Positions 13,977 through 41,273 of a stretch of 41,273 bases of DNA are shown here, piece after piece. Each line of letters opens with the position of its first letter. The first letter of the stretch is position 1. Source of the stretch: Guillardia theta CCMP2712 (taxonomy: Eukaryota > Protista > Cryptophyta); contig NW_005434593.1 of NCBI RefSeq assembly GCF_000315625.1, forward strand, positions 60,659-101,931. Direction: 5' to 3'. The notes beneath the pieces are model-generated. The model ran no database searches and had not been told where the DNA came from. It saw only the letters and a list, made by a program, of their open reading frames with translations. The translations under genes were made by a program, and so were the position numbers.

Positions 13977-15065
13977 TCACTCGTTGACGCTCAGCGATGC
14001 TGCGCATTTCCTGCACGTGTGTCAATCTTGGCTTGTCTGTTGCTAGAAACATCTACACCTGAGCACATCCCCGACAGCTCCCCACTCGTCATCCTTGGCC
14101 TGCGCGTTCAGGATGTAAACCTGCAAGTCCACATCAGATGGAACTTCTCCCGTCCTGGCCTCCCACATTGTCCGCCGACGCCGCAAAGGAGGAAACAACG
14201 TGCAGCTTGGTCTGGAGGGCCGTCAGACTGACGTCAGTCTACTTCTCCTCGCGTCACCTCTTTGCCCGCGAACTCAGTATCAACGACGTACTCGTACATG
14301 TACTTGTCTACACTCCCTGCCTCTTCATTGTCACGCCTTGAGCTGCTCTTGCAATAGACTCGCCTGTTTTGATCGGCCCCGACTGCTTGATGAGATGAAA
14401 CTTGTCACCGAAGTTCTTCGTGTAGCTTCAGAGCAGCATCTTAGTGAGAGTGCAAGGCATCATGCTGGCTGACCTCTCGACGAGGCTTGGCTTCCACGTG
14501 TAGCCCGAGTTGTCAATCTGCTACCCGTTACTTTTTCCTTCCTGTCCCCGCACCTTACCTTCTCGACTTCGCTGAAGATTGCGATTTCTGGCTTCTTCTT
14601 GTCTCTCAGCAGAACGCTGCCAGGACGAGCTTGAAGCCTGTCGAAGACTTGCACTCTCTTGAAGAACACGTCGGTCGGCTTCTGAAAGGAATAGCCCTGC
14701 CCGCTGTACTTCCCGGCTGCGACCTGAAGCGTCTCTACCTCGTACTTGGCGTTCTCTGGAGGCTCAGGGCAGCTCGCTGCTGTGCACTCCGCTTTAGGAA
14801 GTTCAGCGAAGGCGGGGAGAGACGAGGCGAGGAGACAAGACCCGAGGAGAGACGAGACGGCTTCCTTCCTGCTCATTCTTGCCTCTGCCGTCATGTACGG
14901 CGACAGCGTCGTCGAGCTTCGCCGAGGAAGCTGAGAGGAGGACGAGACCTTGCAGAGAGCTTCTGCTGAACGAGAGGAGGAGCGGAGAGCGAAGGGCTCG
15001 GGGCCTACCAGGAAGCAGCTTGCTGCCATGGGCATCGCTAGCGCTACTACAGCCTTCATCTGCAT
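13977..15065 (-). CDS. PsbP-domain thylakoid lumen protein with tripartite presequence
   Basis: Seven exons splice cleanly: signal peptide MQMKAVVALAMPMAASC-F, Ser/Arg transit peptide, SRKEAVSSLLGSCLLASSLPAFA-E lumen signal. Mature part has GYSFQKP...YMYEYVVDTE...KLHVVSSFAASADNVYILNAQAKDDEWGAVGDVLRKCAASLSVNE*, a PsbP fold signature. Confidence 0.8.
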
Positions 15066-15454: not shown

Positions 15455-17323
15455 ATGGCAGCCTTGCATGGAGGTTGTGCAGAACAGTTCAGGTGAGAAC
15501 GATGAGAGGAGAGGAGAGGAGAGGAGAGGAGGGGAGAGGAGAGGAGGGGAGAGGAGGGGAGAGGAGGGGAGAGGAGGAGAGTGGAGGGGAGGGGAGAGAA
15601 CGTAGGAGAGGAGAGGAGAGGAGAGGAGAGAACGTAGGAGAGGAGAGGGAGGATGGAGGAGGGGGAGGGAAGTTGAGGAGAGAACAAGAAAAGGAGAAAA
15701 AAGAAAGGAACAAGACAGTCGTGATGAAACCTGGATGCATTATTGTCACACCATGCATATCGTATCATTATCGATGCACCTCAAGGTGTGTTGGAAGCCT
15801 TTAGTAGTTATGTCAAGTTCTGCCTTGATGAGTCATCCTTCTTATGTCCAAGATTTCTCTCTCCTTCAAGCGTATCCTAATACAGTCTGCAGTAGTGCCA
15901 GCGACAGTGATGAAGCTGAGCTGCGAAAGGATGCCGAGTTTCCTGGTGCAGAGAACGAGAATGATGAGGAAGGAAAGAAGAAGAAGAAGAAAAACAAGAG
16001 GAAGAAGAAGAAGGCCGGGGATGGAAGCCTTGAAATGGAGCAAGACCCCGATGCTCGCGCTGCAGGACGAGCCCTACCTCATGAGGCATAGACAACCTGC
16101 TGACATGTGTGATGCTTGAATGTTGAGCTGATGCATTCTTGGCAGGGCATGTCGCGAGCTGGAGATGCTGATGGTGCTGTCGTCGTGACTCTCCTTGTGC
16201 TCCCCTTACATGATGTCAGAATTGAACCCTGAAGCGCTTGCTGAGATCACCCGCACGGTACAGCAGGAGATGGCCGAGCAGGTGAATTGCGTGGGGCGAG
16301 GGCTGCATGAGATTGACTGGAGCCTGCAGCTGAAGATGATCACACAAGAGATGAATCGCTTGAAAGCAGAGCTGTCCGAGAATCTCCCGTGCCTCCCCTT
16401 GTGCTCACCTTGTCCCAGGTACTCTGAGAATGGAGGCCTAGCTGAAATCCAACGCAGCCTGGAGTCCTTCAAGTCCACCAAGATGCTCGACAACACGTCC
16501 AAGGTGATCGATGCAAGCCCCTCAGTCTGTGCTCTCTATCCAAGGAGACTCAAAGCTCGGGTCGATGCTGATCGCTTGTCAGGACGCCGAGGCCCGGCGC
16601 GGGCAGAGGGCGCAAGTGGGGCGAGAGCAAGCTCGAGCCGAGTCCAAGCCAGCCCCCGACAAGAGTGACCTGGAGCAAGCCATGGCGATGCTGCAGGAAC
16701 GACTCAAGAGCCCCAAGGCTGTTCGCTGGGGAGGAGCGACTGAGCGGGAGATACCAGACAACATGCGGGACGTGCAGGAGCAGAGGATGGGAGACGTCGG
16801 ACGTTCAGCAGCTGAGAGTAGCGCCTTCGATGACATCCTGCGTGAGGCGTTGAGGTCGCGAAACAAGGACGCGGAGACTGCGAGAAGAGTGAGGGAGGGG
16901 CCGAGCTCTGATGCTCACCAGAGGTGCGAGCGTTCTACTTGAGGTGCGAGTGTTCTACTTGACATACGTCTTTGTGCAGATTGCGGGATGAGGAGCGGAG
17001 AAGAGATGCGCGCGCAGGAGGGACGGCAGCAAGCAACAGCAACGACGATGGTTTCAACTGGAAGGTTGCGCTGGTTATCGGTATTCTGCTGCTCTTAGGA
17101 CCATTCAGGTAGAGCATGCTGCTGTGCGAGTTACGACAGATTGATGTGCCTGTGACAGGAACGTCCTGACCGAGTTGTATGAGATCTGTGAGTGCTCAGG
17201 CTTCTGTCCTGCTCAACTTCATCCACGTCCTCCCTTGTTCCTTCGCTGACTGGCTGCCCTTTCGTTGCAGTTTTCCCGGAGGACGAGGATTTCAACGAAG
17301 ACTTTCTCATCCAAGTAGATTGA
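15455..17323 (+). CDS. Coiled-coil protein with Lys-rich patch and single C-terminal TM (tail-anchored type)
   Basis: Exons encode GKKKKKKNKRKKKK, helical segments (EITRTVQQEMAEQ|LKMITQEMNRLKAE), WKVALVIGILLLLGPF, and the acidic tail PEDEDFNEDFLIQVD*. Confidence 0.55.
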
Positions 17324-17499
17324 CTCTGATCGGGCCCGGGGAGGCCCTCCGAGTGAATTGCAGCTAGCAGTCACGGTTGTAGTGACTCTTCTCAGTTCAT
17401 CTTCCGAGTGGGTCTAGTAGCACAGCTTTTAAGTTTCACGCTTTGATGAAGTGAGTCTAACAGTCCCGAGACGGGACTGAACTGAACTGTTGATTGCCG

Positions 17500-17750
17500 C
17501 TCCGACAGTCCGACGACTCCGCCGGGCCGGGCCCGGCCGCGCCTCCGCACCGCACGGCGAGGCTACCGTACCGGACGCCCCGGCATGGCCCGGCCCCGCC
17601 GCCCCGTCCCCGGGCCCAGTGCCCCCGTCCGGTGAAGGCTCTCCCCCGGTCCGGCGGGCCGCGGCGCCGGGCCCGGCCGGGCGACGTGAGGCTCCGCGGC
17701 CGTGTGCCGGGGTGGGAGTATCCGGAAAAGTATCCGGAATTTCGGATACT
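17500..17750. promoter_or_regulatory. CCGG-dense island directly upstream of the p23 gene
   Basis: More than 15 CCGG in ~250 bp, very GC-rich, non-coding. Confidence 0.4.
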
Positions 17751-17823
17751 GGCAGGGGCGCAGGAGTTTCTGGATCATTCCTCTGCAATGGCAGGTCGCA
17801 AGGACGGGACGCGGGGAGGGGCC

Positions 17824-19218
17824 ATGGCGGGAAGGTGAGAAGATGAGGGGAGGAGGAAGATACAGAGAAAGATGAAGAGCAGGAGAGGGTTAGATACAGA
17901 TGTTAGTGGAGATATTTGCTCTTGTTTCTTCATTCTTCCCTCTCTGAGAGTTAGAAGGGTCAAGAATGGCACAGTGAAAGCTGCAGCCCACCTTCTCTTC
18001 AGATATCCTGGATCAAACTTGTTCAATCGCATCTTGTTTCGCTTAGATGGAGGAGTACTCCCTTTTCCATCATGGCTTCTCTGTTCTCCTGTACCCTGCC
18101 TCGCATCAGGCTGTTTGCCATTTGATGATATTCTTGGAAAAACTGTGTTGCAGTTCCTTGCCGTGTTTAGCAAGAGCATGCATGTTGTTTGTTGTCATAT
18201 GAAATCATTGACTTTTTATCGCATCTTTTGAGTCGTTCTTTTCGCCTTGTCTGCTTCGTTTGCTGTGTTGTAACATGAGAGCGGTTGACGTACACCTGCC
18301 GCAGGCTCGTCTTCTGCATGTGCGTGACTTTTCTTTGTGGTACGATCGTTTCGAATCCGATGCAAGGAGGCGAAGTGGCAAGACTGAATCTCCGAGCTTA
18401 CCGGCCTCGTGCTGGCCATTCCTTGGAGGGCCTCAGATTACGAGGAGGAGCCGAAGGTCATGTGCCAGGAGTAGCATGGTCGCAGCGACAGAACACCCTG
18501 TTGTTCAAGGTTGACGTCCCGCATGATGCTGCTTCGGTTGTGGATGATTTGAAGCTCTCTGGCAACAAATTGACCTGGCAAGGAGAACTTGTCAACTTGA
18601 ACCTGGAGCTCTACGGCAGTGTGGATGAGAATTCGATCAACAAGAAGTTCGATGGGTGAGTAAGGATTTTGGTGCATACCAGTTGACTGCTCGACAGAGG
18701 ACGTATCGTGACTGTGGTAGCGACAAAGTCGACCAAGGAGTGGTGGCCGCGACTTACCTCTGGTCCCAAGCCCGCCAACGTCAAGGTAGATTGGGCAACC
18801 TGGCAAGACGATGCGGAAGGTCGGTGCTCTTTGTTTGTCTTGCTTTGGGCATTGTAGCTTTGCCCGGAGTTGTGAAGGAGCTGACTTTGAGATGGTGCAG
18901 ATGAAACAGCCAAGTACGACTCTATCGGAAAAACAGGAGAAGGGAACTTTGATGACGACTTCAACTTCGATGAGCTCAACAAGGGCAAGGACAACTCCAA
19001 GGTGAACCTCAAAGTTGGGCTGCTATTTGTGTGCTTACTCGCCCCGTGAATTTCAGTGGGCGGAAAACGATGATGCTCCAGAAGAGAATGACGATGGAGA
19101 TGCAGACGACAAAGAAGAAGCAAAGAATGATGGGGTTGAGATCATGGAAGACGAGGCTGAAAAAGGCAAGGAGCCCCCGGCTCAGAAGGAAGGCGATGGA
19201 GACATGCCTGATGCGTGA
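17824..19218 (+). CDS. p23/Sba1-type CS-domain Hsp90 co-chaperone with signal peptide and LRLRGG junction
   Basis: Exon 1 (17824-17834) joins 18305 to give MAGRLVFCMCVTFLCGTIVS-NP...GLRLRGG-AEGHVPGVAWSQRQ...LELYGSVD...WWPRLTSGPKPANVKVDWATWQDD plus an acidic tail. PxVxWxQR and WPRL...KVDWxxWxD are p23 hallmarks. Confidence 0.85.
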
Positions 19219-19416
19219 AATGTGACCCGAATTTTCCAGTGATGCTCATTTGAAGGTTGAATGTTGTGACGAAAAGGATGCAATGGACCGCGAGCAGACT
19301 CGCAATATCTAGTTTGCTCGTTGATAATACAAAAACAAAGAGATGTCCACCACGAAAGCATGCCATCTCCTCGAATCACTATGATCGACACTTGGCGATT
19401 GAGAAGCGCTGCTAGC

Positions 19417-19847
19417 TTAGGGTGTCTTGGTGTAGTAGGGGACACCCGTCACTTTCTTCCCCTGCAGGACAAGTAAGGGCAGCATATGTCTGCGCATCTC
19501 CTCGCGCTACCTTAGCTTCGTTCTGAGCGTCCTCTTGCTCCTGCTGCATGTACTTCTGCGCCTGGGCAGTCTGCAATCGCAAAGTCTCACTGGAAGACAA
19601 GTACACTCAGAGGTACCTCATCCAAGTAGGAGGAATCGACAGGCAACGGTGTGATGCCCATCTCCAGAGCCCCTTGCTTGGTTGCGGTCTTTGCAGCATT
19701 GTCGTAGACTTCCTCCTCGCCTATTCCCCAGACGAGCGAAGTAGGAGAGTTGCTATGTCCTCCCGACCTCGTGATCAACACCAAGGCAGCAAGTAGCGCC
19801 AAGAGGACCAAGGGGACTGTCAGAAGTCTTGTCTGCGATGACAGCAT
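19417..19847 (-). CDS. Small secreted or signal-anchored hypothetical protein (3 exons)
   Basis: MLSSQTRLLTVPLVLLALLAALVLIT...YLDE|TAQAQKYMQQEQEDAQNEAK|GKKVTGVPYYTKTP*, with in-phase GT-AG introns. Confidence 0.65.
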
Positions 19848-36840: not shown

Positions 36841-39800
36841 TCCATCACCATCACAACCACCACCACCACCTCCTCCTCCTCCTTCTCCACCGTCTCCTTC
36901 TCACTTACTCCAGGTCGGCGAGCCTTCGCTCCCTCCCAACGTCGATGAGGTGGTTGCGGAGATGTCGATGCTGTGCGGGTCCAACATCTCTCACGCCCTC
37001 GCCTCCCTCTGCGGGATCTCCCCCGTCCTCCTCCTCGACCTCTCCGACCCCTCCAACCTCCCGCAACTCGCCCCCCAGCCCAACTTCAACTCCTCCCTCC
37101 TCGAGCAGAACTCTGAGGTGAGGCTACAAGCTGGAGAGACTGCGGTGGGGGAAGACGAAGGAGAGTAGAGCAGACGTTGAGAGGGGAGGTAGAGGAGGAG
37201 GAGGGAGCAGGAGGAGGAGCTGTGAGGGAGAGGAAAAGGAAGCGAGGGAGGAGACGAAGAGGCAGGGAGTAGAGCAGGAGGAGGATGGAGGGAGAGGGGG
37301 AAGGGGGTGGGAGGAGGAGGAGAAGAAGAAGAGTAGCAGGATGTAATGGTGTGAGCAGGTATGCTGGCACATCGTCGAGGGTTGTGCGAGCTCGCTGAAC
37401 TCGATCTCGAGGATGGTCCTGCTCTGTGTCCGACATCCCTCACTGCTTCGCCGCATGCTCTCAGCTCACTGCGCCCTCACCCAGACTGCTGCTGTCCTGC
37501 AGATGGTCCAGGCCAGAGATCTCTGCTTCAGGTGAGCCATGTCCTGATTCCTTCGTAGCTGACCTCCTCCTCCTCCTCTCCCTCTCCCTCCCCTCCCTTC
37601 ACTTCCAGTACACTCTGCGACATCGCTGCTCCTCAGCCCTACCAGAGTCGCATCCTCGTGTCTCCTCAAGGGAAGCCCCCGGCTACTCCCGCGAGTGAGG
37701 GCGACGGCAGCCATGCGAGCAAGTCGAAGGAGGAGGAGCATGGAGGAGAGACGACGGAGACAGTCGTGAGGGAGGAGGAGATGGCTGAGGAACGTGTCCT
37801 TGCCATCGAATCTCTCCTCCTCCTCGTCTTTGAGCTCGCAAGCTCTCTTCACGAGTCCTGGGGCAAAATCCTTCCTGTCTTCCAGTACCTCCAGACAGAA
37901 ATTTCAGGTCCCTTCCTCCTTCTCCCCCCCTCTCTCTCCCAGCCCTCCCTCTGCTCCTCCTCCTCCTCCTCTTCGTCGTCGTCGTCGTCGTCCTCCTCCT
38001 CCTCCTCCACCACCACCTCCGCCGGGGGGTCGTCGGCGGTGGTAGTGGGGGGAGGGGAGGGGGGCGGCGCCTCGCTCAACCAGGAGGATGATGGAGGGTG
38101 GGGAGGGGCGGGGGTGACGAAGATGTAGGAGGATGGAGACTGAGGCTGACGTGGTGGAGGGGGATGGGGGAGTCTGCGGTGGCGCAAGACGTGCTGCCAG
38201 ACGCGTGAGCATGACGTACAGCGAGAGGGAGGGAGGGNNNNNNNNNNNNNNNNNNNNNNNNNNNNNNNNNNNNNNNNNNNNNNNNNNNNNNNNNNNNNNN
38301 NNNNNNNNNNNNNNNNNNNNNNNNNNNNNNNNNNNNNNNNNNNNNNNNNNNNNNNNNNNNNNNNNNNNNNNNNNNNNNNNNNNNNNNNNNNNNNNNNNNN
38401 NNNNNNNNNNNNNNNNNNNNNNNNNNNNNNNNNNNNNNNNNNNNNNNNNNNNNNNNNNNNNNNNNNNNNNNNNNNNNNNNCCTTCTACTCCTCCTCCTCC
38501 TCCTCCTCCTCCTCCTCCTCCTCCTCCTGGTCTTTCTCTTTGCTCACATGACGGCAGAGACGGGCGTGAAGGAAGATCATGATGTGAAGGAGGTCGAGGA
38601 CTCAGGCAAGAAGAATTTCTTTGGCAGGAAGAAGACCAAAGTCAAGAACCCTGCTCCCTCCTCCTCCGCTGCTGCTGCTGCTGATCCTCCTCGACCTCCT
38701 CCTCCCCTCCTGGGCCAGCTCAACCGCCTGCTCCTCCTCCGGCGCTGGATGGACCTGCTCTTCGAGCAGAGCAGCCGGCTACCTGAAGACGCCTGCATAG
38801 TGCTCCTGACCGCCCTCTACCGCCTCTCCCTCTCCTCCCTCCAGGACCTCAAGGCCGGTGCCCTCGACCTCGGCTGGACACACTCGGGGAGCCTGGGGGA
38901 GCTGCTGTTCGGTGTGGAGAGGACAGTGAGGATCGCGCGGGGGAACCTGATGCGGCTGGAGGGGCTGTGGGGAACGATTTCTGTTCACTTGTCGCACGTG
39001 TCGTCGCATGCTCGTTCGGTCATGCGGCAGCATGGGATGCTCTACTTCTCCGAGCTGATGAACGAGGCCTTCAACTTCGCGTGCTCGGCTGGGGGGGAGC
39101 AGGGCGGGGAGGAGGAGCGAAGGAAGGACGGGAAAGGGAAGGACGAGGGAAGCTCTGCTAGCCTCAAGAAGAAACTGATCGGGGCGTACGAGGACATGTT
39201 CAAGTGCTCTTACAGTGACACCAAGAGCCTCGTTCTCTCCAGCCTCCATCAGCTGCTCTCTTCCTACGGTATGAACATCCAGTCTGCCTGGCCCTCCATC
39301 CTTCACTTCCTCCCACTCGTCGCTCAGGATCCAGAGAGTCAGCAGGTGCGGCAGGGAGCCACGTGCCTCGCCTACGTGTGCGATCACCTTCTGCTCTCCC
39401 TCTCGCTCCCCGACGTCGAGCAGCTCCTGCAGTGCCTCCTCCTCTTCGCCTCTCAGGACGTGGATGCTGAGTCGAGCCTGCGGGCGATCGCGATGACGCG
39501 GGACGTGGGAAGGTATCTGATGGGCAAGCTCTGCCGCCAGGAGTTGGAGGGGAAGGAGGAGGAGAGGAGGAGGGCAGAGGTCACTCGCTCGGTCCTGTCC
39601 TCCTTCGCCAAGCTGGTCCAGCTAGGGAGGGACAAGAGGAGCAGAGTGAGGGAGGAGGCGATCAGCACGGCAGTGGAGATGAGTCTGGGGCCCGAGGACA
39701 AGTGCGCGCATGTCATGATCAGCTTCCTTGGGTCCCTCCTCCTCCCCTACCTCCAGGAGACCTCCGGCTGGATGGAGACGGTGGAGCAGGAGAAGAAGAA

Positions 39801-41273
39801 CTTGCACAGGCAGTGGCTGAGGACTTGGAGCGCGGGGATGCGGGGAGCAGCCAAGGTGCTGAGCGAGCGGATGGCAGGGGCTGGGAAGGGAGGGAAGGAG
39901 GAGGAGGAGGAGGTGTGGGGGTTGTGGGATCCCTTCCTCCATCTGTACAAGTGGAGCCTGCGCAGTGAGAACATGGCGATCGCATGCGAGGTGACGAGCG
40001 AAGTTTGCGCGCTGATGTCGAGGAACATAGTCCAGCTGCCACTGAGCTGCTGGACGAGGCTGTGGCAGGAGGTGGAGGAGAGGATGCGGGAGCTCTGCGA
40101 GGATGAGCGGGTGGAGATAGAGCGCATGTGGCTGATCCTCTCCGAGCTGACGGCGGTGCTGCAAGAGAGCCGAGCAAGTGCAGGGGAGAAGCTGAGCAGA
40201 GAGATCATCGCGAGCTACGTGGACATGCTCAGCTCGCTGGCTGTGAGAGAGTGGAGGAAGAAAGGTGACGTCCTCCTCCTCCACAGCAAGGGATCAGTAC
40301 CTTCCTCCCCGTCCCCAGGCGAGAGAGGGACGGAAGAGGAAGCGGGAGGGGGAGGGGAGGGGTTGATGAACGAGCGGATGGCGCAGCAGTTTGATGCTCT
40401 CGTCCTCCTCCTCGACAGCTTCAGCGCAGCTGAGAAGATCGACCTCTGGAGGAAACTCTTCGCCTCCTTCTCCTCCGTCCTCCCCGGCAGCTGCAGCAGC
40501 AAGGAATGGTCGTCCCACCTCAAGGATGGGAAACCCAGGAAAGATCCTTCTCCCTCCTCGTCCTCCCCCTCCTCGTCCTCCCCCTCTTCCTCCCACCAGC
40601 ACAGCGTCGCCGTCACTTCTCGAGCAGCGTTGGCCCTCAACTTTCTGTTCGAGCGGGCAGGGGAGGAAGTGCAGCCGCGAGTCTTCGAGGAAGCGATCCT
40701 CCGCCTCCTCCTCGCCTTCTCCTCGTCAGGACCAGGAGGAGCCCAGCAGTCGCTGCGGCTGCCGGTGGCTCAGGTGGTTGAGAAGATCGTGGAGATCGGC
40801 ATCTCCCAGCTGAAGGCCCTGGAGGAGGAGAGCCAGCGGAGAATCTGGACGTGTATGATCGAAGGGTTCAGAGAGGTAGAGAGAGGAAGAGAGCGAGAGG
40901 GGGGAGGAAGAAGAGTGGAAGGAGCAGGACAAGAGCAACAATGAGGAGGGGAACGAGGACGAGGACGAGAGGGAGGAGGATGAGGAGAATGAGGAGAGGG
41001 TCAGAGCGAGAGGAGCTGAGGGTGTTGGCAGGCGATTCTCTGTGTGGAGAAGAAGACGAAGAGCGAAGCAGAGCTTGTGGACGAGACATGGTGAAGCTCC
41101 TGATGAGAAAGGGGGGGAGGGAAGAGGAGGCAGGGGGAGGGGAGGAGGGGGAGGGGGAGGGGAGGAGGGGGAGGGGAGGGAGGGGAGGGGGAGGGAGGAG
41201 TTACGTGGAGTGCGAGGCGTGTCGCGTGCTTGCCTCTTTGTTTTGTTTTCCCTATTTTTAATAATAAGGGGCT
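33990..41273 (+). CDS. MON2: MON2 (Sec7-less BIG/GBF-related trafficking scaffold; DCB, HUS, HDS regions), 3' end unresolved
   Basis: DCB: KISRLGLVMLQRL...EAIQLRVVQ...AAAAALRQ. HUS: VLKELLLLING...LAMDILDSLF and QWVKLIALECL. HDS: LLFEQSSRL, GNLMRLEGLW, VLSSLHQLL..YG..IQSAW, LGRDKRSRVREEAI, QWLRTW. No Sec7 catalytic motif seen. Spans N gap 38238-38480. Confidence 0.8.
35867..35935. repeat. Intronic 23-bp tandem repeat x3
   Basis: cctacccacccac(t/c)tcactagtt three times. Confidence 0.9.
36770..36870. repeat. Intronic (CAT)n/(CAC)n microsatellite
   Basis: Lies between donor GTGATG (~36738) and acceptor CCAG (~36912). Confidence 0.85.

Follow-up and report, generated by a model that had tools for sequence, protein, structure and literature searches.

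A stretch of 41,273 nucleotides from the cryptophyte Guillardia theta CCMP2712 (contig NW_005434593.1, positions 60,659 to 101,931 of the forward strand; hereafter the window, meaning the whole stretch analysed) carries a gene for a predicted p23-type co-chaperone whose N-terminal leader ends in LRLRGG, the C-terminus of ubiquitin. This hexamer, referred to here as the box, is very probably a selected functional signal. It recurs at the leader ends of other proteins of the periplastid compartment (PPC), the space around the plastid that is left of the red-algal cytoplasm, and it probably serves there as a cleavage site. The best overall explanation is that this p23 is sent into the PPC, that its leader ends at the box, and that a protease of the ubiquitin-tail type cuts after Gly-Gly. 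As a whole, this explanation is considered to have an even chance of being right.

The box occupies positions 18432-18449 in frame with the p23 domain. An initial annotation made from the sequence alone had claimed this placement and the match to the ubiquitin C-terminus, and both were confirmed. The spliced protein runs in the order MAGRKDGTRGGAMAGR; a 15-residue hydrophobic core; Ser; a 26-residue linker; LRLRGG; AEGHVPGVAWSQRQ...; a WWPRLT motif; and an acidic tail. Its N-terminus is MAGR (KDGTRGGAMAGR), followed by the core LVFCMCVTFLCGTIV with a Kyte-Doolittle hydropathy of 2.75 over 11 residues. The signal peptide was called by a hydropathy heuristic and the cut after Ser was judged by eye; by this heuristic the signal peptide first proposed was found again, as MAGR plus the 15-residue core, once exon 1 was joined in RNA run X8. 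Assuming the cut after Ser, the linker (NPMQ...SLEG) holds 4 Arg, no Lys and 2 acidic residues. The +1 residue is Asn, or Ile at the other plausible cut, and no Phe, Tyr or Trp lies nearby. With the basic linker of about 26 residues originally described, this agrees in length and in its 4 Arg and absence of Lys; the lack of Phe at +1 is plausible from the cuts read by eye.

The linker also contains a weak half-copy of the box, RLNLR (18381-18395), about 17 residues upstream. A G[LM]RLR string lies at the matching relative place in orthologues P0030, P0003, P0006, P0014 and P0037, and the EGLRLRGG of the window protein resembles both copies brought together.

The box is strikingly constant in a leader that is otherwise highly variable. 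Seventeen cryptophyte p23 sequences were anchored at Gly-Gly and profiled position by position. P4 Leu, P3 Arg, P2 Gly and P1 Gly are each present in 17/17 sequences, P6 is Leu in 14, Met in 2 and Gln in 1, and P5 is variable. Ubiquitin-like conservation beyond P6 was sought in the same profile, and P7-P10 are not conserved. Among the 17 orthologues, pairwise identity averages 0.81 over the box, compared with 0.09 over the 20 residues ahead of it and 0.40 over the CS domain. By this measure no other part of the p23 protein is as well conserved as the box, which is under strong purifying selection while the remaining leader drifts. All relatives with a complete N-terminus show a hydrophobic signal-like start, a linker of 21-50 residues and then L-x-L-R-G-G. 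An apparent leaderless form (P0005 and P0012, starting MTLRGGG) was rejected as a truncated gene call, as the contig holds an in-frame signal peptide and linker upstream. The apparent exception P0013, with AVAGG, was likewise set aside as a probable bad gene call; its close relatives in loci L012-L014 have VLELRGGGG.

The generality of the box was checked on published sequences, namely the ASAFind 2.0 supplement (PMC12136025, Appendices S2, S3 and S9). It stands at the leader end in 6/6 G. theta proteins listed there as PPC-localised by green fluorescent protein (GFP) fusion (Gould et al. 2006; listing in PMC12136025). These leader ends are as follows, with a slash at the putative cut after Gly-Gly.
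ugg-t (starch synthase-like): RMSLRGG/AGSD; the sequence after Gly-Gly is AGSDAIVPDQK
EF-1alpha: MLRLRGG/GKEKHH, GKEK being the canonical EF-1alpha start
14-3-3: ALRLRGG/VDGE; the sequence after Gly-Gly is VDGEDPAADQQYENLSR
RRM1: PLRLRGG/FRGD
cyclophilin: ALRLRGG/GLPY
Ubc8: IPLRGG/ANPT

Additionally, the G. theta Cdc48 homologue (sCdc48) carries MRLRGG. In the cryptophyte plastid set of the same supplement, the box is absent from proteins with Phe or Tyr at +1. The two fructose bisphosphatase (FBPase) paralogues illustrate this separation, as the one without an aromatic +1 residue reads QALRLRGG/SAAT, whereas the stromal paralogue with Phe at +1 has no box. Among G. theta best-BLAST matches in which the mature domain directly follows the signal peptide (NTRC, glutaredoxin, sTLP-1 and sDTC), no box was found. 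The recurrence of the box at PPC leader ends, together with its absence from stroma-targeted paralogues, bears out the expectation of the initial annotation. These sequences give good support to a leader-end signal dedicated to the periplastid compartment. No additional gene with a leader box turned up in ~64 kb of cryptophyte-like metagenome sequence surrounding p23 orthologues, a sample too small to be informative.

The box may also reach beyond cryptophytes. Several Thalassiosira pseudonana PPC proteins carry a looser x-R-G-G at the corresponding position, 30-60 residues past the signal peptide: LSARGG in sCdc48, DIGRGG in sCdc48-2, FDLRGG in sDer1-1, FQIRGG in sSec14 and LSLRGG in TrxH.

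One alternative is that the hexamer arose by chance in a leader rich in Arg, Leu and Gly, or that it forms a structural strand in this subfamily of p23 proteins. From the window composition, exact LRLRGG is expected at ~6e-7 per position, or about once or twice per proteome, and a single match is weak evidence by itself. The shorter LRGG is expected at ~5e-5 per position, and its occurrence in 6/6 proteins within ~100 leader positions has a probability of ~1e-14 by chance, as a rough figure. Taking conservation and recurrence together, the box occurs far more than chance would allow. A structural role fares no better. In the AlphaFold model of orthologue P0037 the box lies within a segment of pLDDT below 50 without secondary structure, and the first strand starts a few residues later; since it is modelled as disordered and outside the fold, the box is predicted not to be structural. 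Moreover, LRGG is present in 0/52 ordinary p23 proteins. This alternative is refuted by the greater conservation of the box compared with the CS domain and by its presence on six unrelated localised PPC proteins, and is regarded as hardly credible. Two other LRGG strings in the window, at 14931 (+) and 5129 (-), were dismissed for want of gene-like context.

The gene product is a divergent p23/Sba1-type Hsp90 co-chaperone with an N-terminal extension, as judged from family profiles and a predicted fold; the family and fold tests were run on orthologues, not on the spliced protein of the window. An exhaustive HMMER search of 1.84 billion representatives returned 22 matches, 19 of them true. The repeat-protein matches P0004, P0020 and P0022 were rejected as spurious and inflated by repeats. 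The named true relatives are cryptophytes, namely Baffinella frigidus KAJ1484020.1 ('HSP20-like chaperone') and Rhodomonas CCMP768. A profile of 8 family members matched PF04969 proteins of fungi, diatoms and green algae, annotated as 'prostaglandin E synthase 3' or HSP20-like chaperones, at E 1e-14 to 1e-4. Pfam gave no match on exon 2 of the window gene alone, nor did a word-indexed protein search with this exon, within its length window. The CS match of orthologue P0007 was borderline (E 9e-4, with 20.6 bits where the cut-off is 21.3). The P0037 model shows a beta-sandwich at residues ~50-125 with pLDDT 80-88. Its best Foldseek matches include 2kmw (Arabidopsis p23-like), 7krj_C and 1ejf (human p23) and 2cg9_X (Sba1) at E 4e-5 to 5e-4, and the human matches include p23 in Hsp90 complexes. 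Furthermore, the spliced window protein has a WPRL-type motif, ...EWWPRLTSGPKP...VDWATWQDDAEDE..., followed by an Asp/Glu-rich tail. With cytosolic p23/Sba1/PTGES3 proteins (PF04969) the family shares the CS beta-sandwich, the W.QR start, the WPRL motif and the acidic tail. Unlike them, it has a cleavable-looking leader of 48-60 residues and forms a distinct subfamily, so far only from cryptophyte-like sequences, that falls under the Pfam CS cut-off (P0007).

A PPC location of this p23 is inferred from its leader, which is of the same type as that on the six GFP-localised G. theta proteins. Cryptophyte nucleomorph genomes encode Hsp90 (PMC3542566), and it would therefore be biologically sensible for a p23 encoded in the nucleus to be imported into the PPC. 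The gene thereby predicts a nucleus-encoded partner for the nucleomorph-encoded Hsp90.

Several features suggest that the box is not only read but also cut. In the family, the conserved first-strand Trp lies 7-13 residues after Gly-Gly (9 in the window protein), and ordinary p23 proteins (n=52) have it 6-22 residues (median 10) downstream of the initiator Met. A cut after Gly-Gly would therefore leave a normal p23 N-terminus with matching spacing, in agreement with the initial annotation, which had put the box at the junction of presequence and mature protein. The sequence directly after Gly-Gly in the window protein is AEGHVPGVAW... (AEGHVPGVAWSQR). Pro never follows Gly-Gly; the window protein has Ala at this position, and the orthologues have G, D, E or S. 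This is compatible with cleavage, if only weakly. On these grounds of position and sequence, the box is probably a cleavage site.

The competing view is that the box is left uncut and acts as a sorting or retention signal, read by the SELMA translocon or by a factor that binds ubiquitin tails, or halting onward import across the inner membranes and thereby keeping the protein in the PPC. Such a signal would fit the way the box separates PPC from stromal proteins in the FBPase pair. A known case also points this way. Toxoplasma PUBL, like the proteins considered here, belongs to a red-derived complex plastid with ubiquitin-dependent import and carries RGG at the leader end, where its authors proposed a deubiquitinase site. 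When tested, however, the RGG, which stands ahead of a ubiquitin-like domain, was neither processed nor required (PMC5487736). PUBL differs further in being a single protein, not a compartment-wide signal. Against an uncut box stands its position. A receptor signal need not abut the mature domain, yet the box is always found at the canonical protein start while the linker varies from 21 to 50 residues; in p23 the first strand follows it after 7-13 residues, and in EF-1alpha GKEK comes immediately after it. In addition, it would seem costly for p23, EF-1alpha or 14-3-3 to retain 30-60 disordered residues. An uncut box is accordingly rated as improbable.

If the box is cut, the proposed course of events is as follows. 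The p23 would enter the PPC, the home of the nucleomorph-encoded Hsp90, by means of a two-part leader made of an endoplasmic reticulum (ER) signal peptide, split by a 470-nucleotide intron, and the 26-residue Arg-rich linker without lysine or aromatic +1 residue. This leader closes with L-x-L-R-G-G, which would signal the leader end across the whole compartment in cryptophyte PPC proteins. Once the protein has crossed SELMA, a cysteine protease whose cleft is of the ubiquitin-tail type, either a deubiquitinase or a ULP/PLpro-like protease, would cut after Gly-Gly. The cleft would have a narrow S1/S2 channel admitting only Gly-Gly and pockets for Arg P3 and Leu P4. The cut would release a p23 starting AEGHVPGVAW..., equivalent to cytosolic p23, and would also remove any ubiquitin attached to the leader.

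The positions conserved in the box, Gly-Gly, Arg P3 and Leu P4 and P6, are those read by the narrow clefts of deubiquitinases and papain-like LXGG proteases. The PPC ubiquitin precursor gt_155024 (Appendix S3 of the supplement) is also relevant here. In it, a signal peptide is followed by a degenerate ubiquitin-like domain that ends in LRVRGG, and then by a true ubiquitin that ends in LRLRGG-SY; because of this last ending, a ubiquitin C-terminal hydrolase must act in the PPC. The architecture of gt_155024 may also hint at the origin of the tail box in leaders.

Cleavage could instead be the work of an enzyme that is not of the ubiquitin-tail type, such as an M16 processing peptidase related to the stromal or mitochondrial processing peptidases (SPP/MPP), cutting at R-G/G or R-G-G/X, in which case the likeness to ubiquitin would be convergent. 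Both its place at the leader/mature junction and its invariant Arg bring the box into line with the Arg -2/-3 rules that presequence peptidases such as MPP follow, and such an enzyme is also favoured by the missing cryptophyte homologue of the diatom deubiquitinase ptDUP (PMC12412216). M16 sites, by contrast, are degenerate, and the box has five near-invariant positions (L, L, R, G, G) across 17 orthologues and unrelated PPC proteins, for which reason a deep, narrow substrate cleft is indicated. As its invariant Gly-Gly, Arg P3 and Leu P4 match ubiquitin-tail clefts, the box appears more specific than the M16 rules. Besides, the PPC must already hold an enzyme that trims LRLRGG-SY from its own ubiquitin precursor. 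A protease outside the ubiquitin-tail type is considered an outside chance, about on a par with the uncut box. From the sequence pattern, assignment of the enzyme to the ubiquitin-tail type is tentative, falling a little short of an even chance.

A number of observations weigh against the proposed explanation. Deubiquitinases for the most part depend on contacts with the ubiquitin fold and act poorly on short LRGG peptides. SELMA import in diatoms reportedly needs N-terminal lysines, a result ascribed to Lau et al. in 2015, and the leaders here are nearly lysine-free. Leader composition in the p23 family is 1.9% Lys and 9.2% Arg, compared with 7.3% Lys and 3.1% Arg in the mature parts, and this low lysine content fits poorly with the leader-lysine ubiquitination described for diatoms. 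ptDUP, the diatom PPC deubiquitinase and the only one named, has no cryptophyte homologue (PMC12412216, PMC5756292), and the RGG of PUBL went unprocessed. The P0037 model was built on a shallow alignment (8 sequences) and has a mean pLDDT of 57. Moreover, intron 1 is kept in a contig of run X1, and the signal peptide rests on one splice from one run's contig. The dedicated PPC maturation system suggested by the initial annotation is hence upheld as far as a selected leader-end signal is concerned, and the missing ptDUP, the uncut PUBL motif and the Lys-poor leaders count against its deubiquitinase mechanism.

A bolder proposal is that one PPC protease of the ubiquitin-tail type reads a universal ubiquitin-tail cut mark in cryptophytes (the looser x-R-G-G in diatoms), removing the leader and stripping any ubiquitin attached to it by SELMA. 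One candidate would be a nucleomorph-encoded UfSP/ZUFSP-like peptidase. A zinc-finger protein with a UfSP-type peptidase domain is present in 4/4 cryptophyte nucleomorph genomes examined and has been described as a putative deubiquitinase (PMC6559170). This single-protease proposal is speculative and thought rather unlikely. If true, it would merge deubiquitination and PPC transit-peptide removal, which are now treated as separate and unexplained, and would make it possible to recognise the entire periplastid proteome by a sequence marker.

Known systems resemble the box in part. In ubiquitin fusion precursors, such as polyubiquitin, ubiquitin-ribosomal fusions and gt_155024, the next functional protein likewise begins right after LRLRGG, and release occurs by cleavage after Gly-Gly, the same cut proposed for the p23 leader. 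Unlike these precursors, the p23 leader is a disordered linker of 21-50 residues behind a signal peptide with no beta-grasp, and enzymes that depend on the ubiquitin body would not recognise it. Only 26 residues separate the signal peptide from LRLRGG in the window protein; because of this length, and of the pLDDT below 50 in the orthologue leader, a ubiquitin fold cannot fit ahead of the box, just as the initial annotation had stated.

The LXGG sites of coronavirus papain-like proteases are similar in that a short ubiquitin-tail motif is cut without a ubiquitin fold by a protease that is also a deubiquitinase. They differ in serving viral polyprotein processing and in that Arg P3 is dispensable, whereas it is invariant in the cryptophyte box. 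PEXEL/TEXEL (cut by plasmepsin V and ASP5) and oomycete RxLR share the plan of a short motif tens of residues behind a signal peptide, a dedicated protease and one destination. However, their sequence is different and they involve aspartic proteases in the ER or Golgi, and the cryptophyte box ends the leader at the start of the mature fold.

The p23 leader resembles the bipartite signals of cryptophytes and diatoms (Phe +1 for the stroma, non-aromatic for the PPC; ASAFAP; ASAFind 2.0, PMC12136025), with its signal peptide, transit-like part and, at the cut judged by eye, non-aromatic +1 residue. The published rules cover ~25 residues around the signal-peptide cut, whereas the LRGG box lies further downstream. 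No published description or rule for an LRGG/LRLRGG leader box was found in the full-text literature, subscription papers lying outside this scope, so that the prior description which the initial annotation had advised looking for did not turn up. The only text mention found is a passing 'LRGGG motif' in Omp85 homologues of Phaeodactylum tricornutum and Cyanidioschyzon merolae (PMC2222254). The box would be a much sharper predictor of the periplastid/nucleomorph proteome than the 'no Phe at +1' rule. It also opens to simple experiments the loss of the leader and the roles of the PPC ubiquitin machinery beyond driving translocation.

The gene itself comprises 5 exons on the + strand, with its coding part at 17788..19218 according to spliced RNA contigs, and joining the exons gives an intact open reading frame (ORF) of 260 residues. 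Its features are listed below.
17788..17834, + strand: exon 1 coding part, with in-frame ATGs at 17788 and 17824; positively charged signal-peptide start (MAGR...)
17835..18304, + strand: intron 1, 470 nucleotides, GT..AG; spliced out in an X8 RNA contig, still present in some transcript assemblies
18305..18353, + strand: rest of the putative signal peptide, hydrophobic core LVFCMCVTFLCGTIV and Ser; hydropathy 2.75, cleavage site by eye
18354..18431, + strand: transit-peptide-like linker, 26 residues, Arg-rich and lysine-free; orthologue linkers 21-50 residues with 9% pairwise identity
18432..18449, + strand: LRLRGG box, identical to the ubiquitin C-terminus; from the sequence and the 17-sequence family profile
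18450..18655, + strand: predicted mature p23 start AEGHVPGVAWSQRQ..., then most of the CS domain up to the end of exon 2; from the alignment and the fold of orthologue P0037
18656..18697, + strand: intron 2, 42 nucleotides; joint in runs X1, X8 and X11
18698..18819, + strand: exon 3, last CS strands, WWPRLT motif and VDWATWQDD; from RNA contigs, the spliced ORF and the alignment
18820..18900, + strand: intron 3, 81 nucleotides; from RNA contigs
18901..19001, + strand: exon 4, start of the acidic tail; from RNA contigs and the spliced ORF
19002..19056, + strand: intron 4, 55 nucleotides; from RNA contigs
19057..19218, + strand: coding part of exon 5, with the acidic tail of the C-terminus and the stop codon TGA (19216-19218); the transcript extends to about 19283

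Introns 2, 3 and 4 are backed by spliced contigs from three runs. The splice 17834/18305 is carried by the contig of run X8 at a depth of 342, compared with 24 for the unspliced form, and it places the start that the initial annotation gave for its feature, 18305, at the first base of exon 2. The use of exon 1, for which that annotation had called for RNA data, is thus backed by X8 but not by the intron-retaining contig of X1. Where intron 1 is retained, the upstream ATGs yield an ORF of 16 or 4 codons, with TGA at 17836-17838 directly after MAGR, and no signal peptide is made; since retention puts a stop at this point, the signal peptide depends on the 17834/18305 splice. The retention could be plain pre-mRNA or regulated splicing. 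Run X22, examined as raw RNA reads, hardly covers the p23 gene at all. The two in-frame starts lie 36 nucleotides apart and both read MAGR, as ATGGCAGGTCGC... and ATGGCGGGAAG/G (17788-17835).

The window's own p23 protein is absent from the matches of both large protein searches, of which the profile search scored only the 8000 candidates sharing most words. The protein of a neighbouring G. theta gene (GUITHDRAFT_115087) is present in the searched collection, unlike the window p23. The public annotation may lack the p23 gene or model it wrongly.

Several neighbouring features were also noted in the window. Just upstream of exon 1 lies a very GC-rich island (17500-17700), dense in CCGG and GGCC and with ORFs on both strands. 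Further upstream, the 3' part of another gene on the + strand occupies 17000-17456, with introns 17106-17155 and 17188-17270 in RNA contigs. Downstream, a convergent neighbour gene on the - strand (19262-19600) has an intron at 19461-19509 (CT..AC on the + strand) and a raw RNA read depth of 48-166. Its poly(A) reads fall at about 19300, some 15-20 nucleotides from the end of the p23 transcript. Finally, the single-exon ORF of 798 residues at 38548-40944 (+) is 100% identical to GUITHDRAFT_115087 and is Mon2/Sec7/BIG1-like (PF09324).

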